Positions 49,213 through 55,800 of a stretch of 64,000 bases of DNA are shown piece by piece. The translations under genes were made by a program, and so were the position numbers. Origin of the DNA: Guillardia theta CCMP2712 (lineage: Eukaryota; Protista; Cryptophyta). The stretch is from NCBI RefSeq assembly GCF_000315625.1, contig NW_005434604.1, positions 62,001-126,000 on the forward strand, in the 5' to 3' direction. Every line of letters starts with the position of its first letter. Position 1 is the stretch's first letter. The notes under the pieces were generated by a model. It was not told where the DNA came from, ran no database searches, and was given only the letters and a program-made list of their open reading frames with translations.

Positions 49213-49958
49213 CTCACCGAGTCTCACCATGAGTTTCGGTCATGTATCATAATTCAATTAAAGGTTGTGATCCTTTTAATGTCCTCCTCACCCACCTCTC
49301 TTATCCTCTCTTCTTCTCTCCTCCTCTCCTCTCCCCCCGTTGTCTCCGTTCGTCCCCCCCCCCCCCCCCCCCCCTCCTCCTCCTCTTCTCCGCTGCTCTC
49401 CTCTCCTGCTTCTTTGTTCCATACTTCCACTTTTACCTTTAACCTTACCTACCACCCTCCTCCCCCCCCCCCCCCCCTCCCCGCCACCTTCCCTCCCTCC
49501 CTCCCTCCCTCCCTCCCTCCCTCCCTCTCCCATATCCTCCCTCCTCTCCTGTCCCTGCCCTTCACCACCTTCACCTCTGTCCTCCCGGCTCGTCCTCGAG
49601 TCGCGCCATGCCGCCTTCAGCTCTTCGACCTGATGCCCCATGAAGCAGGATGAAGGATCGGCTGAGCGTGCATGTGGAGGAGGTCGCTCCCCTAGACGAG
49701 GAGGGGAGGGAAGACAGAGGAACGGAAGAGAGGGAGCAGGAAGAGGACAAGGACAAGGATGGGGTGAGGTGGGAGAAGGTGGAAGTGGAGGGGGAAGCGA
49801 AGGGAGAAGAGGAGGAGGGGAGGGAGGGAGAGTACGTGAGAGTGATCCTAGTAGATCGCGTTGCAAGGCCAAGGGGTGAAGCACAGACAGTCAGCCAGCG
49901 ACGCCCTGCCAGCCATGCCGAGCAATCTCTCGCGGGGCGAGCGAGGGCGGTTCTGGCC

Positions 49959-52740
49959 ATGAGCATGGGGAAGGCCAAAGAGGAGGAGGGGCAGGAGGAG
50001 ACCGATGGGGAGGCGGTATGGGAGTGCTTGAACCTGTTCAGGCACGAGAGGAGCTACCGGAGGAGAGACCTGATCCGCTCAGGCTTCTTCCGCAAGCTCA
50101 TGGCTGGTGACTTCTCCTCCGCCAACCAGCTCCAGATCTCCATCAGGGACGGCTGTACCAACGCTGATGCGATGGCGGCGGCCCTGGACTACCTAGAGGC
50201 GAAACAGCTGCTGACAGGAGACTTCGACAGCTTCCAGGTGTTCGTAGCCTCTCGGCTACTCATCATCCCAGATCTCTCCCAGCAGGCAGCCCAGGAGATC
50301 GCCAGCTGCCTGGGCGCGGCGAACATTCTGCGAGCGATGCACCATGCTCGAGAGTACCACTCCGTCGAGCTGCAGAGGGTCTGCCTTGAGTTCTGCTGGA
50401 CTACCTCAGCACGGCCGCAAACGTGGTGCAGGGGATGCTGGTGGACTCGTCGGCGCACCAGGAGCTGCTGGCGCAGCTGAGAAACCTCCCGCACGACTCT
50501 GTAAGCTCCTGCTGGTTGAGGGGGGGAAGCAAGAGGGTTTGACGAGCATGCGAAGTTCAGGGAGCTGGTGGTGAGCAGGAGGAAGCGGGTGGAAAGGTAC
50601 TACCATCCCCTGCCCGCGTACAAGATGTGCGTCATTCGGAGGACCAAGAGCCCAGAGAAGAGCTGGGCTGTGTACAAGCTCTACGAGGAGCACACTATGG
50701 AGTTTCAGCTGTCAGCTGCTCGAGATCTCAAGACTGGGGAGTGAGAGCATATCACCGTTCTTGTCCTCTCCTCCCGCTGCCCCTGACCTCAAGTTGCTGC
50801 CAGCATCGTCGTCACCACGGACGAGAACCTCTCCCAGACTCCCCGGGGCATCCACAGCGATCATGTCGTAGCTGTCCTCCACTCCAACACCTTCGAGACT
50901 CACGTGAGAAGGAATTTCGCTCCTCCTCCTTTTCTTCCTTCTCCTTTTTTCTTCCTCCTTTCTCCCTCCCCCTTCCCGCTCCTCCTCCTCATCCTCTTCT
51001 CCCCCTCCAACACCCTCCTTGCTCCTTTTACTATTCCACATCCCCCAATACCTCCCCTCCCCCCTCGTCCACCTCGCGTCCTCCAGTTCCTCTCAACTGC
51101 TGTCTCCTTCCCCGAAACCCCAGCTGTCCTCTTCCTCAACCACTTGCTTCTGTGTTCTAGTCAGTGCGTCCTCCTCCTCTCCTCCTCACCTCCTCTCACC
51201 TTCTTCTCAGTTCACCCTCTTCGACAACGGGATCAACAACAGCCGCCTCCTCCTCAACCTCCCGGGCTGTCAGAGGCGGGAGCTAGGAAGCATCCAGTAC
51301 GACTCCTCGCTCCTCCACCACGGCCCAAGGAGCATCCTCTGCGTGTTTGCAGAGTTCCCCTGCAGCCAGAGCGCTGCGGACGATTTTGTTGGGGAAGAGG
51401 AGGGAGAGAGTGCTGGCGACGACTCTCCTCCTCCTCCATCCCACCATGGTTACCTCCACCACCTCCTCCTCCTTCCACTCCTCCTCTCCTACCATGGTCG
51501 TCCCCTCTTCCTCTGCTCCTCTGCTCCCCTGCTCCTCTCCTTCCCTCCTCCTCTCCTCACGACTCCGCAGACAAGACACGCTGGGGCAGGCCGGAAGGGT
51601 TTCTTCAGAAGCAGCTTCATGCTACGACGGTGAGCTGCCTTGGACGCCATGCACGTGTCGGTGCTGAGAGGACATGCAAGGTGAACGAAGGAGTCGTGAA
51701 GCTGCACAACCTTGCGCCGAAGGTACTCCTCCTCCTCCTCNNNNNNNNNNNNNNNNNNNNNNNNNNNNNNNNNNNNNNNNNNNNNNNNNNNNNNNNNNNN
51801 NNNNNNNNNNNNNNNNNNNNNNNNNNNNNNNNNNNNNNNNCCTCCTCGCCTCTCCCTTCCAAGTAGACATTCGATTCCTGACCTCCTTCCCATTAACTTG
51901 CGGCGCAGTGGAACGAGAAGACAGGAGCATACAGCCTGGACTTCTACAAGCGTGTCAGGGTATCGTCCTTTCTCTTCCCCTACTCGTCATCTTGCACCCC
52001 TTGCTGATCTCCTCCTGCCTTTCCCCAAGATCTGTTTCTCCTCCTCCTGCCTTTCCCCCAAGATCTGTTTCTCCTCCTCCTGCCTTCCCCCAAGATCTGT
52101 TTCTCCTCCTCCTGCCTTCCCCCAAGATCTGTTTCTCCTCCTCCTGCCTTCCCCCAAGATCTGTTTCTCCTCCTCCCAACCTCCTCCTGTTGTTCGTCTC
52201 ACTGCTGGCGAAGCTTCCGAGTAAGAAGAACTTCATCCTCGTGCCTTGCGACAACGAAGGTCCAGTCCTGTCCCTCCCCTTCCTTTGTTCTCCCTCCCTC
52301 CAGTTTCCCCCCTGTTGCTCTCCCCTTCTCTCCCCTCCTCTCCCCTCCCACACCTTCTCTCCTCAGCAAATTCCTTCACTTTGCTTCTTCCATACACTCT
52401 TCTTACACTCTTCTTCTCCTCATTGCCGTTTCCCTTCGTCTTTTCCTCCTCTTCTCACCAACTACTCAGAAGACGTAGTATGCATCTTTGGCAAAGTTCG
52501 CAAGGACACATATGTGAGCCGTTCCCTTTCCTTCCCCCTCCTCTCTTATCTCGTTCTCGTCAGGCTCTCGACTTCAAGCCCCCACTCTCCATGCTGCAAG
52601 CTTTTCTCGCCGCTCTCAGCAGGTTCAAGCCAAACCCTCCACCCGCCTGTTCGTCCAACCATCCTCTGCTAGCCCTCTCCCCTCCTCTTCTCCTCGCTCA
52701 CTTTCTTTCCAGCTTCGAACATCGCATGGGGTTGACATGA
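49959..52740 (+). CDS. BTB/POZ domain + Tubby C-terminal domain protein (apparent 1-nt frameshift near 50393)
   Basis: BTB: RSGFFRKLMAGDFSS...ISIRD...AMAAALDYL...VFVASRLLIIPDL...LQRVCLEF. Tubby: CVIRRTK..YKLYEE..QLSAAR, VAVLHSNTFETH/FTLFDNG..RRELGSIQYDSSLLHHGPR, LHNLAPK/WNEKTGAYSLDFYKRV, PSKKNFIL, IFGKVRKD, LDFKPPLSMLQAFLAALS/SFEHRM. Confidence 0.88.
51741..51840. other. Assembly gap (100 N) in an intron
   Basis: Run of N in a (CCT)n tract. Confidence 0.99.
52008..52176. repeat. 32-bp intronic minisatellite, 5 copies
   Basis: ctcctcctcctgccttcccccaagatctgttt repeated. Confidence 0.95.
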
Positions 52741-52813
52741 TGATACGACGAATACACGTACACGCAGAAAACAATCTCATCACTCCTCCCTCCTCTCTCT
52801 ACACCTCTTCATG

Positions 52814-55800
52814 TCATGTGAAGCTTGCATCCTGCGCTAGCCGGTCAAGTCCAGCTGTCCACGCCTCTTCGTCGTCCATCGCCGCGTCCTCCCCGGTCCT
52901 CACTCCCCAGAGCATCTCTTGAAACGCTGCTCTCTCCGTCTCCGAGGACAGGTCGTGTATCCTTTCTCCCTCCTCCACTCCTCTCCCCCTCTCCCCCCCG
53001 TCGCTCGACCCTGCCGGTCCCCCGTGATCTCCTCCTTTTACTCCGCCATGAGCCGCAGGAGGCTCGCCCCCCAACGTCTCCTTGCTGTCCTCCTCCGCAG
53101 GCCCAGCTCCAGCTGCAGCTCTTGCTCCAGCTCCTCTATCTTCATCGAAGGTGGACGGGTCCAACTGGCTCCCCGGCGAGGTAGGCTGCAGTTTCAAGTC
53201 CGTGGGATACAAGATGTACTGCAAAGTTCCTGCCATGAGGCAAGTGAATGGAAGAAGATTCGGCAAAAGGCAGAAGGAGGTAGAGCCAGCGGCAGGATAA
53301 GGGGTAGGAAGTGGATGGGGCAGGAGGAGAAAGGAAAACAGCCGACGCCAACAAGAAGTGGAAGTCGAAAGGTGAAGGAAGAGGCAGAGGAGAAAAAGAA
53401 AAAAAGAGGGAGAGAGGGAAGAAGAGAAAGGAGGGGGAGGGGCAACTTACGATCAACTGGCCCCATCCCTTGTTCTGCCATGCTGCTGATCCGGTTGCTC
53501 GTCTCCCTCATCGCTCCGATCCACTTCCCAGTCAGGCTCGCCTCATCCTGCACATCCTTGGAGTGAGGAAGGAGAGTCTATGGAGAGTCAGAGGATCAGT
53601 CAAGGGGTTGAGCTCTTACCTCGCTGCCTATCTTCATCCCGTCCGTTGCCGCCTTGTACATCTCGTAAAATGCCTGCGACCCGTCCTGCAGTCCTCAGTC
53701 AGATCGAGGTGGGTGGAGGGAGAGAGGGACTTGCGGAAAGTAGAGAGGAGGGGGGTGGAGGAAGAGGAAGAGGAAGAGGAAGAGGAAGAGGAAGATGGAT
53801 AGTAGACAAGTGTAGGGGAACTGAGATTCAGACCTTGCTCACGAAAAAATTTGTCAAGCTTTCATCCTTCTCCTGTTCAACATCCCCAGCACGCAAATGC
53901 TTCATCTCCGCCATGCGTCCCGCCCTCTCTCCCTCGCTGTCAGCTTCCCTCCTCGAGTGGCTCCGAGCATTCGAGCCCCACTTGGCATCAAGCTCCTCCT
54001 CCCACGCGCGTGTGGCTCGATGGTGATGCTTGATCTCGGGGGAATCACGGTAATCGACTCCTTCCCCCCTGCCCTTCTCCCTCTCCCTCTCCCTCTCCCT
54101 CTCCCTCCTCTCCCTCTCTTTCCTCCTCGATCTCTTCTGATCACTCCTCACTGTACTCGCCGAGCTCGCGCCGTCTCCCTCGTCCGCCCCGCCTTGTGCG
54201 TTGGAGCTCGTGACCGTCGGGAACATCACAGACTCCAGTAGTCGGTCGACCCCCTTCGCCAGCCCCGACAGATAGTCTTGACCTGGGAGCCGAGAGGAGG
54301 AGCTAGAAGACCTGTCCATGGCCTTCCGCTCCGACGTCGCCCCTCCATGCTCACTCGAGGCTCGGCTCGACTTGCCTGACCCTCCTCCCACTGTGGACAG
54401 CATGGCGAGGTGGTTTGCGTCCTCCTCAGAGATGGCAAGGACAGACATGGCGGATGAGTCCAAGGAGGAGAGCGCTTCCAGCCCTCCTTGTGCCGTCAGG
54501 AACCTCTGCCGGCATGCGATGATGATGTTCTGCAGGTTTGCGAGGATGGAGAGCTGACTGCCGTTGGGTGTGGCCTGCAGCAGCGAGACGTCAACAGGCA
54601 TCACCCCGTGAGCGGCCAGCAGCTGATCCACGTCCTTGCTCAGCATCAGCACAGCTACTTGCACTCTCGTCCTGTCCTGACCCTTGAGGAACAGGGGGAA
54701 GTCGTTGCCGTCCTTGGTATTGTTCCTGGAGGATGAAACGCTCAGGTCGCGCATGACGCTCCTGGAGGACATCGGGACAGGGAGGAAGCGAAGGGTCAAG
54801 CCGACGTACTTGGACATGAGCAGTACCACATGGCAGACGTGCCCGAGAGCAGTCGAAACCATCTCATCGTCTCCGCTGCTGGAGGATGTCAAGGCTGGAA
54901 GCATCAGCCCGCAGATCGTCCGGGTCACCCCATCTGCCGCCGTGAAGATGGGATAAGCGCTGTGGAGAGCAGCGGTAAGGAAGTTCTGCCGAGTTCGCAG
55001 CTCCTTCCGCGCGTCTCTCAGCGCCTGTCTGTCTGCATCGATCGCCTGCGAACGCTTCCTCCTCGCCTCATCGAGGGAGTTTGCGGGGACCATGCTGTCT
55101 TCCTCAGCTGTATCCGAGGACCTCCGCCTTGCACTCTCGTCAGCTGGGGAGTCTCTTTCCATCTGAAGGTTCATGACAGTCAACACCCTTTGTCCGAGGC
55201 TCTTTCGCAGTCTCTCCGACTCAAGGCTGACTTGCACCCTGCCTTCCTCCCGTTCCACCTGAGCTGACAGCTGCTGCACCTTGTTCTCCTCCTCCGCCAC
55301 CCTCCTCCGAAGGTCTCGCAACCTTCCCGCACTTTCTCTCTTGCGTAGAAGCTCCTGCTCTTTGGCAGCCTGTGAAGAGAGTAGCTCCTCCAGCCTCTGC
55401 TTCGCCAAAGCCGTCTGAACTTTCTTCAGCATGACGCACTTTCTCATATACGCGAGGGCCTGTGATCGAGCAGAACAAACCCTGGGAAGATGTTTCTGCT
55501 CCTCAACGCCTCCTTCCTCTCTCACCACCTCCTGCAGTCTCGACGCTGACGAGACTTCAGGAGTGCTCTGACCACTCGCGTCTTCGCTCCTCCTCTCACC
55601 ATTGGAGAGATGCAGTGTCACTGTGCCGTTCGAACTGTCGTGGACGGTGGGATTAGCATTCTTGATGGTGTCCCCGAGGATGTTTCCACTGGCAGCAGCT
55701 CGCTTGCGATGCTTCTGGTTGAAGCCATCTGCTCTTGAAGCTTGCATCGACAGATCTCGATTGAGATTCATCTTCTGAAGCAACCCGGACATGGACGAAA

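Follow-up and report, generated by a model that had tools for sequence, protein, structure and literature searches.

In animals, Tubby proteins serve as membrane adaptors that depend on phosphoinositides, in plants they are receptors of F-box ligases, and the coupling of a Tubby domain to a cullin ligase is known from the F-box of the plant proteins and from the SOCS box of animal TULP4. To our knowledge, it is poorly understood what the Tubby barrel recognises when it acts as a ligase receptor. The gene described here lies on the + strand, at positions 49650-52740, of a stretch of 64,000 nucleotides from the cryptophyte Guillardia theta CCMP2712 (assembly GCF_000315625.1, contig NW_005434604.1, positions 62,001 to 126,000), which is referred to as the window and to which all coordinates refer. 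It joins an N-terminal half with a BTB fold to a complete C-terminal Tubby domain, and this BTB-Tubby architecture is almost certainly real and transcribed.

In the plant Tubby-like F-box proteins (AtTLPs, NtTubic) the ligase-docking part stands first and the Tubby barrel at the C-terminus, the same order as in the G. theta protein. Unlike the latter, in which the first part is a BTB domain, the plant proteins use an F-box to dock to Skp1-CUL1, and they belong to a different lineage. Animal TULP4 (β-propeller, SOCS box, Tubby) likewise combines Tubby with a cullin-recruiting box, of the CUL5 type, but the G. theta protein has neither the SOCS box nor the WD40 part of TULP4, and the order and size of the parts are unlike. 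Pfam profiles of the F-box and the SOCS box find no match in any of the pieces or orthologues. The C-terminal domains of mouse Tubby, TULP1 and TULP3 (PDB entries 1C8Z, 1I7E, 2FIM, 3C5N and 8FH3) are homologous to that of the G. theta protein and form the same kind of barrel around a central helix from the C-terminus. The G. theta protein has no Tub_N region and no N-terminus that binds intraflagellar transport complex A (IFT-A).

For the N-terminal half the closest described systems are BTB adaptors of Cullin-3 (CUL3). The BTB-BACK-Kelch proteins KEAP1, KLHL11 and KBTBD2/4 and the MATH-BTB protein SPOP share with the G. theta protein the BTB fold, the helices of the 3-box and a hydrophobic residue in the α3-β4 loop and, like it, they place a cullin-docking part and a β-rich target-binding domain in one chain. 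In the G. theta protein, however, the Tubby barrel replaces the Kelch propeller or the MATH domain, BACK is reduced to a few helices, the φ-x-E motif lacks its glutamate, the first BTB strand is set apart from the BTB core by about 55 variable residues, and docking to CUL3 is putative. GMCL1/germ cell-less, a BTB-BACK-GCL adaptor of CUL3 (PDB entry 9ijj), is the best match of the family profile, comprising the BTB domain and the first BACK helices. In contrast to GMCL1 the G. theta protein contains no GCL domain, the sequence identity is low, and its α3-β4 loop reads F-S-S where GMCL1 has W-K-E.

Assembled contigs of four runs were aligned to 49400-53100: one run, X1, is of DNA, and the other three, X4, X5 and X7, are RNA-like and each come from a separate study. 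Sampled words are present to 98% in one DNA run and to about 60% in many other runs, a share that is roughly expected of data sets containing exons only. From 49536 as far as the assembly gap, the X1 DNA contig follows the window without rearrangement and retains the introns. In one contig of each of the three RNA runs, the identical ten segments are spliced out, all with GT..AG ends. These contigs begin at 49536, 49570 and 49610, and those of X4 and X7 extend beyond 53100. After removal of the introns and restoration of one missing T, the open reading frame (ORF) comprises 1704 nt without internal stop, from the ATG at 49650 to the TGA at 52738-52740, and encodes a product of 567 amino acids in 11 coding exons. 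The BTB and Tubby halves are split only by a phase-0 intron of 55 nt, and both are thus in one ORF.

The first-pass annotation, made from the sequence, had proposed a BTB-like N-terminus and a complete Tubby C-terminus in one gene on the same strand and had asked for RNA linking the exons of the two parts. Such a link is provided by the contigs of X4, X5 and X7, which cover one transcript with one ORF. The start of the gene had been placed at 49959, which proves to be an internal methionine, Met104; residues 1-103 upstream of it are conserved in a protein of Hanusia phi (P0001). In addition, the Tubby domain is encoded by ten exons (exons 2-11) instead of about eight. The features of the gene are as follows.

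49536-49649, + strand: 5′ leader, with RNA contigs starting at 49536, 49570 and 49610
49650-50500, + strand: coding part of exon 1, residues 1-284, with an acidic disordered N-terminus, the BTB domain and the 3-box/BACK-like helices (RNA contigs, alignment with Hanusia P0001, AlphaFold2)
49833-49856, + strand: first BTB β-strand, residues 62-69, VRVILVDR (conserved in the family, modelled with high confidence)
50028-50306, + strand: BTB core, residues ~127-219, including the α3-β4 loop GDFSSAN at residues 153-159 (Pfam, family profile, Foldseek)
50316-50500, + strand: predicted 3-box (helices 223-235 and 239 to ~262), followed by additional BACK-like helices that reach to the exon 1 boundary (AlphaFold2, Foldseek, Atlas)
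50501-50555, + strand: phase-0 intron 1 of 55 nt, which divides the BTB/3-box part from the Tubby part (removed in the X4, X5 and X7 contigs)
50556-52737, + strand: exons 2-11 with introns 2-10, encoding the Tubby C-terminal domain, residues ~298-567, from nt 50595 onwards (RNA splice joints, colinearity with homologue L001, Pfam)
50556-50740, + strand: exon 2 (this and the following exons from RNA contigs)
50804-50903, + strand: exon 3
51211-51448, + strand: exon 4
51316-51330, + strand: HHGPR pocket loop, residues 415-419 (aligned with FKGPR of mouse Tubby, K330-G-P-R332)
51571-51629, + strand: exon 5
51681-51722, + strand: exon 6
51741-51840, no strand: assembly gap of 100 N within intron 6 (51723-51908), which is spliced out of the RNA contigs from 51721/3 to 51906/8 and has GT..AG ends
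51909-51959, + strand: exon 7
52214-52259, + strand: exon 8
52470-52513, + strand: exon 9
52564-52622, + strand: exon 10
52713-52740, + strand: exon 11
52738-52740, + strand: stop codon TGA
52741-53100, + strand: 3′ untranslated region (RNA contigs continue for ~560 nt past 53100)

The window has a GC content of about 55%, and the introns are short, rich in C and T and of the GT-AG type. Translation of 49500-53300 in the three forward frames yields protein-like stretches with repeated changes of frame, between which lie intron-like stretches rich in C and T. In exon 1 the ORF as assembled (49650-50480) departs from the protein-like frame near 50395. The assembly is one T short behind 50390, with TT at 50390-50392 in the window and TTT in the contigs of X1, X4, X5 and X7. 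Since the DNA and RNA reads agree on the extra T, the frame break is a one-base assembly error and not a mutation. With the T restored, exon 1 reads CLEFLLDYLSTAAN, the Hanusia counterpart being CLEFLLHYLSTAAN. The RNA contigs of the three studies bridge the assembly gap by joining 51722 to 51909 in phase 0 (...HNLAPK/WNEKTGAY...), and the stretch that spans this joint of exons 6 and 7 is unbroken in the homologue L001 (VAPRWNERLGSF). The gap is therefore wholly intronic and no coding sequence is lost.

The first strand of the BTB fold lies in the conserved region upstream of Met104. Its pattern, h-V-x-h-h-D-R, is kept in all 11 of the 11 family fragments, and in L001 the counterpart of the strand, VVVLIDR, is encoded in an upstream exon. 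A variable linker of ~55 residues lies between this strand and the BTB core. A search of the family profile against the sequences of the PDB retrieves the BTB domain of GMCL1 with an E value of 1.5e-8 and, weakly, those of ZBTB8A and ZBTB7A (0.02-0.06). The orthologues P0002 and P0003 reach 20.8 and 20.5 bits with the Pfam BTB profile (PF00651), for which the cut-off is 20.5 bits. The AlphaFold2 model of residues 1-247, computed with an alignment of 11 family rows, adopts the BTB fold of a three-stranded sheet and a cluster of five helices, with a predicted local distance difference test (pLDDT) score of ~90 over residues 130-247 and 62-69. In a Foldseek comparison with the PDB, the BTB domains of KEAP1, KBTBD2/4, SPOP and KLHL11/22/3 come out on top with a probability of 1.00 and a root-mean-square deviation of about 2.6 Å for 115-122 columns (2.5-2.8 Å for about 117 columns with KEAP1, SPOP, KBTBD2 and the KLHL proteins), and the top matches are CUL3 adaptors without exception. 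The modelled structure supports the assignment of the N-terminal half, as a long-form BTB domain, to the dimeric CUL3-adaptor structural class of BTB domains. The Pfam score of the window exon itself stays below the threshold; the identification of the BTB domain, already proposed in the first-pass annotation, is based on the profile of the family, on the orthologues and on the modelled fold.

In the model, BTB helix A5 is immediately followed by two helices, 223-235 and 239-246 and beyond, which are predicted to form a 3-box. In sequence they follow N-x-L-x(3)-A-x(2)-Y-x(4)-L-x(3)-C-x-x-F-L, the pattern with which a BACK domain begins, and the resemblance to BACK is confined to these first helices. 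The model of the orthologue P0002 (residues 50-265) has the same BTB fold and equivalent 3-box helices with pLDDT scores of 75-89, later helices being less confident. It matches the BTB/3-box of SPOP at 20-22% identity, and the alignments extend into the BTB-3-box/BACK region of SPOP and KLHL11. In the Atlas, where neighbours are found by language model and structure, P0002 has BTB-BACK(-Kelch) clusters as its only neighbours. The 3-box is common to the BTB adaptors of CUL3 and is required for high-affinity binding of CUL3 (PMC3597819). Phe155 in the α3-β4 loop of the G. theta protein is located, according to the alignment with GMCL1, at the position of SPOP Met233 and KLHL11 Phe130, which in those proteins clamps helix H2 of Cul3 (PMC3597819).

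The Tubby domain is complete and starts right after the helical region. Its landmarks follow in order: Y-H-P-L-P-x(4)-C-V-I-R-R, L-S-A-A-R, F-T-L-F-D-N-G, E-L-G-x-I-x-Y-x(6)-G-P-R, L-x-N-x-x-P-K-W-N-E-x(3)-Y-x-L-x-F, S-K-K-N-F, F-G-K-V-R-K-D-x-Y-x-L-D-F-x-x-P-L-S-x-L-Q-A-F and the C-terminal helix. The motifs W-N-x(4)-Y-x-L-x-F and F-G-K-x(9)-F-x-x-P-h-S-x-h-Q-A-F of mouse Tubby, TULP1 and TULP3 are among the features that are kept. The Pfam Tub profile (PF01167, cut-off 27 bits) matches single short exons in the correct order, i.e., exon 7 with 16.4 bits (E 0.0078, positions 182-201 of the hidden Markov model) and exon 10 with 14.5 bits (E 0.029, positions 234-252). In the colinear homologues the same profile gives 34.8 and 50.3 bits for ORFs of L001 and 33.6 bits for L005. 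In addition, phmmer aligns L001 to the structures of mouse Tubby, TULP1 and TULP3.

Binding of phosphatidylinositol 4,5-bisphosphate by mouse Tubby depends on K330 and R332; the double mutation KR330/332AA abolishes it and R332H weakens it, and a basic patch at residues 301-305 provides a second site for the same lipid (PMC10445746). In the G. theta protein the pocket loop HHGPR corresponds to FKGPR of mouse Tubby, so that, as the first-pass annotation had noticed, the arginine is kept (R332 as R419) and the lysine is replaced. Lys330 is exchanged for a histidine (His415/416) in the window and for a serine in L001, for which the alignment of the pocket with 1I7E/1C8Z places YETNVLGFKGPRK against YDTSLTG-SSPRS. 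The second basic site is absent: when the sequences are aligned by eye between the conserved flanking stretches, the patch 301-305 is replaced by RDLKTG, within A-A-R-D-L-K-T-G-D (A-A-R-D-V-E-S-G-H in L001). A further difference from mouse Tubby is an acidic, proline-rich insert of ~25 residues after the pocket strand.

When 1.84 billion protein representatives are searched exhaustively with exon 1 by HMMER, four relatives emerge (P0001-P0004), all of which are fragments from metagenome or transcriptome contigs. The closest homologue is P0001 from the cryptophyte Hanusia phi (EukProt), which covers the BTB half only, with 55% identity over 200 residues in phmmer and 66% in BLASTP. It is also the sole match in a word search with exon 1, in which a length filter would hide full-length relatives. 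A word search with exon 4 finds no Tubby-only model of this gene of 133-421 amino acids on record, and an annotated protein of G. theta itself for this gene was not found in the exon 1 and exon 4 word searches or in the HMMER search. The gene thus seems to be absent from public protein sets, fragments aside. The frame error behind 50390 may be one reason for the lack of a full-length protein record and, with fragments as the only records and one base missing from the frame, routine annotation would miss the BTB-Tubby architecture.

The combination of the two halves is also found outside G. theta. The orthologues P0002/P0005 are carried by contigs L001-L004 (up to 147 kb, GC 64%), in which ORFs positive for Tub lie directly downstream on the same strand. 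A tblastn comparison of the window protein with L001 is colinear over residues 85-567 (E 1.6e-106), with an identity of 38% overall and 59% in the C-terminal part. A metagenome scan returns only the organism of L001 again (L008 and L009, one of which comes from a marine metagenome). Colinearity across both the BTB and the Tubby halves is observed in the marine metagenome contigs L001-L004, L008 and L009 and in L005, the last of these (JGI sample 3300017220) being colinear over the BTB domain, the N-terminal and the C-terminal part of Tubby. Moreover, the two introns of L001, of 90 nt and 124 nt, interrupt the gene at the exact residue and in the phase of introns 3 and 7 of the window. Since the fusion is colinear in other protists and shares intron positions with them, it is old and maintained; it is neither a local accident nor a chimera of annotation or assembly, and a small number of marine protists share the BTB-Tubby combination. 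A word search with the family alignment finds a more distant group of metagenome genes (P0010-P0015), with more introns, in which exons for the N-terminal strand and the BTB domain are recognised (…IVEIVDR…, …LLRSPYFARLLCG…LQLNLRD…); the contigs of this group, L006 and L007, stop short of any Tubby part.

Both introns of L001 (6931-7020 and 7474-7597) seem to start with GC (…CAG/GCCTGC… and …AAG/GCACCT…) and end with CAG, and the first of them carries a CTAAC branch-like site. GC-AG introns are frequent in some haptophytes, and those of L001 may be a hint at the organism.

Cullins of the Cul3 type arose before the main groups of eukaryotes diverged (PMC2785787). By analogy with the BTB-BACK-Kelch and MATH-BTB proteins, the BTB-Tubby protein could function as a dimeric receptor of a Cullin-3-RING ligase (CRL3), the likeliest of the mechanisms considered, to which we give about even chances. 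The BTB domain would dimerise and, with the 3-box, dock the N-terminal cullin repeat of Cullin-3, while the Tubby barrel would stand in for Kelch or MATH and choose the target or the location, by binding either a partner protein or an acidic lipid of the membrane. The outcome would be a two-headed CRL3 receptor. CUL3 binding, dimerisation, the binding of lipid or substrate and the cellular role are what we infer for this protein.

Several observations weigh against such a mechanism. With the Pfam BTB profile the window exon alone scores 13.9 bits (E 0.062, profile positions 33-106), below the cut-off, and residues 1-247 as well as P0001 give no match. The Pfam BACK profile (PF07707) has no match at E ≤ 1 in P0001, P0002, P0003 or the window exon; the BACK-like helices of the first-pass annotation are recovered as 3-box/BACK-like helices in the models, in Foldseek and in the Atlas, but not by Pfam, and the model is of low confidence for the helices beyond the 3-box. 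In the α3-β4 loop, G-D-F155-S-S157, the glutamate of the φ-x-E motif is replaced by Ser157, and the loop varies across the family, with F-S-S, W-Q-G, C-Q-T and, in P0002, R-R-A. BTB proteins that do not bind CUL3 are numerous. Finally, the lipid pocket is half kept, and targeting of the protein to a membrane, as judged from the pocket residues, is for that reason uncertain.

In the main alternative, the BTB domain is a self-association module only and recruits no cullin. The protein would then act as a Tubby adaptor in dimeric or higher-order form, in which the pairing of barrels would add avidity for membrane or cargo, comparable to the N-terminus of TULP3 that links the barrel to IFT-A. This explanation, which in our estimation falls somewhat short of an even prospect, draws support from the degeneracy of the φ-x-E loop, i.e., the missing glutamate and the variability within the family of the loop that clamps Cul3, and it agrees with the marginal Pfam score of the BTB domain. 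A weakened single-site lipid pocket, with His or Ser for K330 and the second patch lost, would gain from avidity, and BTB-zinc-finger and many other BTB proteins are known to function without CUL3. On the other hand, GMCL1, the nearest sequence relative with a known structure, and the best structural matches are CUL3 adaptors, and the 3-box is not only present but belongs to the better-conserved stretches, with no role known besides cullin binding.

Mammalian TULP3 associates in trans with CUL3 and KBTBD6/7; it co-purifies with KBTBD6/7, and its stability is under the control of CUL3 (PMC7948452). The fused BTB domain might represent a cis form of this arrangement, bringing CUL3 to its own Tubby domain, which would be autoregulated or substrate-like, with the level of the protein itself under control; that BTB adaptors are often auto-ubiquitylated would fit. 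This explanation is improbable, as no sequence feature was found that favours autoregulation in particular, and all known BTB fusions of such a layout bind other proteins via their C-terminal domain. Finally, the frame break in exon 1, the N gap, the restriction of Hanusia P0001 to the BTB half and the consideration that a contig spanning two genes is no proof of a single transcript could be taken to indicate two neighbouring genes joined by read-through or overlapping transcripts, or a pseudogene broken at ~50390 and at the gap, but this is highly improbable and both readings are rejected on the spliced RNA contigs and the frame corrected with DNA and RNA, given that the halves are 55 nt of phase-0 intron apart, which is spliced in three RNA data sets to leave a continuous ORF, that the extra T occurs in DNA and RNA reads alike, that the gap is intronic, and that the fusion is colinear with shared intron positions in other organisms.

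A limited survey of the literature found no paper on a BTB-Tubby protein, not even among those that name tubby alongside BTB, and none in which the terms 'tubby domain' and 'BTB domain' occur side by side. In the Atlas, the clusters closest to the C-terminal Tubby part are sets of Tub, Tub with Tub_N, Tub with F-box, and Tub with SOCS box and propeller, without a combination of BTB and Tub. The first-pass annotation, too, knew of no characterised protein with this architecture, in agreement with both surveys. The architecture is apparently undescribed and without a full-length record, although proteins combining Tub with another type of BTB domain may exist. A third, independent coupling of Tubby to a cullin ligase, as suggested at first, is plausible, its independence resting on the lack of BTB and Tub records in these limited surveys. 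The first suggestion had included ciliary proteins among the possible targets; nothing in the present sequence analysis points to cilia. The more complete proposal, in which protists resembling cryptophytes or haptophytes have evolved this third coupling independently, via BTB/3-box to CUL3, with a dimeric CRL3 receptor whose remodelled lipid pocket sets the target or the membrane location, is advanced tentatively, and we regard it as possible rather than probable.

If this proposal is correct, evolution has joined the Tubby barrel to cullin ligases via three docking modules (F-box, SOCS box and BTB), which would make the barrel a general domain for the selection of targets or membranes in ubiquitylation. 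Tubby as a receptor domain of cullin ligases would then be a recurrent eukaryotic solution and not a peculiarity of plants. The remodelled pocket, with His or Ser for Lys330 and without the second basic site, may in that case read another lipid or a protein ligand. The BTB-3-box-Tubby chain offers a compact single-chain system in which the role of the barrel in ubiquitylation can be tested.

Some further observations concern the transcript and the assembly. The 5′ leader contains upstream ATGs at 49608, 49633 and 49640, with upstream ORFs (49608-49649) of 11 codons and 6 codons and, in addition, an ORF of 79 codons that overlaps the main start in another frame; these ATGs may indicate translational control. 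A length of 33 nt or 46 nt for intron 1, guessed from the sequence, is ruled out by the reads, which give 55 nt. When intron 1 is read in frame, a stop follows after 13 codons, which would yield a BTB-only product of ~297 amino acids. P0001, the sole Hanusia phi record of the family, apparently reads into the equivalent of intron 1 (…LPHDT, then VRLL…), and this form could be a chance resemblance, come from a contig that was not spliced or represent a regular isoform. At the other end the RNA contigs reach ~920 nt 3′ of the stop codon, to ~53660, across ORFs on both strands; this part is either a long 3′ untranslated region or an overlap with a neighbouring transcript.

One X1 DNA contig enters the assembly gap with unlike sequence. 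Another X1 contig joins 49827 to 51453, with GA..TA ends and a side of 21 letters, between low-complexity stretches rich in purines or pyrimidines, and this joint is most likely a repeat-driven assembly artefact of that run. Intron 7 contains a tandem repeat at 52009-52176, in which a unit of 32 nt with the consensus CTCCTCCTGCCTTCCCCCAAGATCTGTTTCTC occurs 5.2 times with 97% identity; X4 and X7 have short contigs of their own on this region as well.

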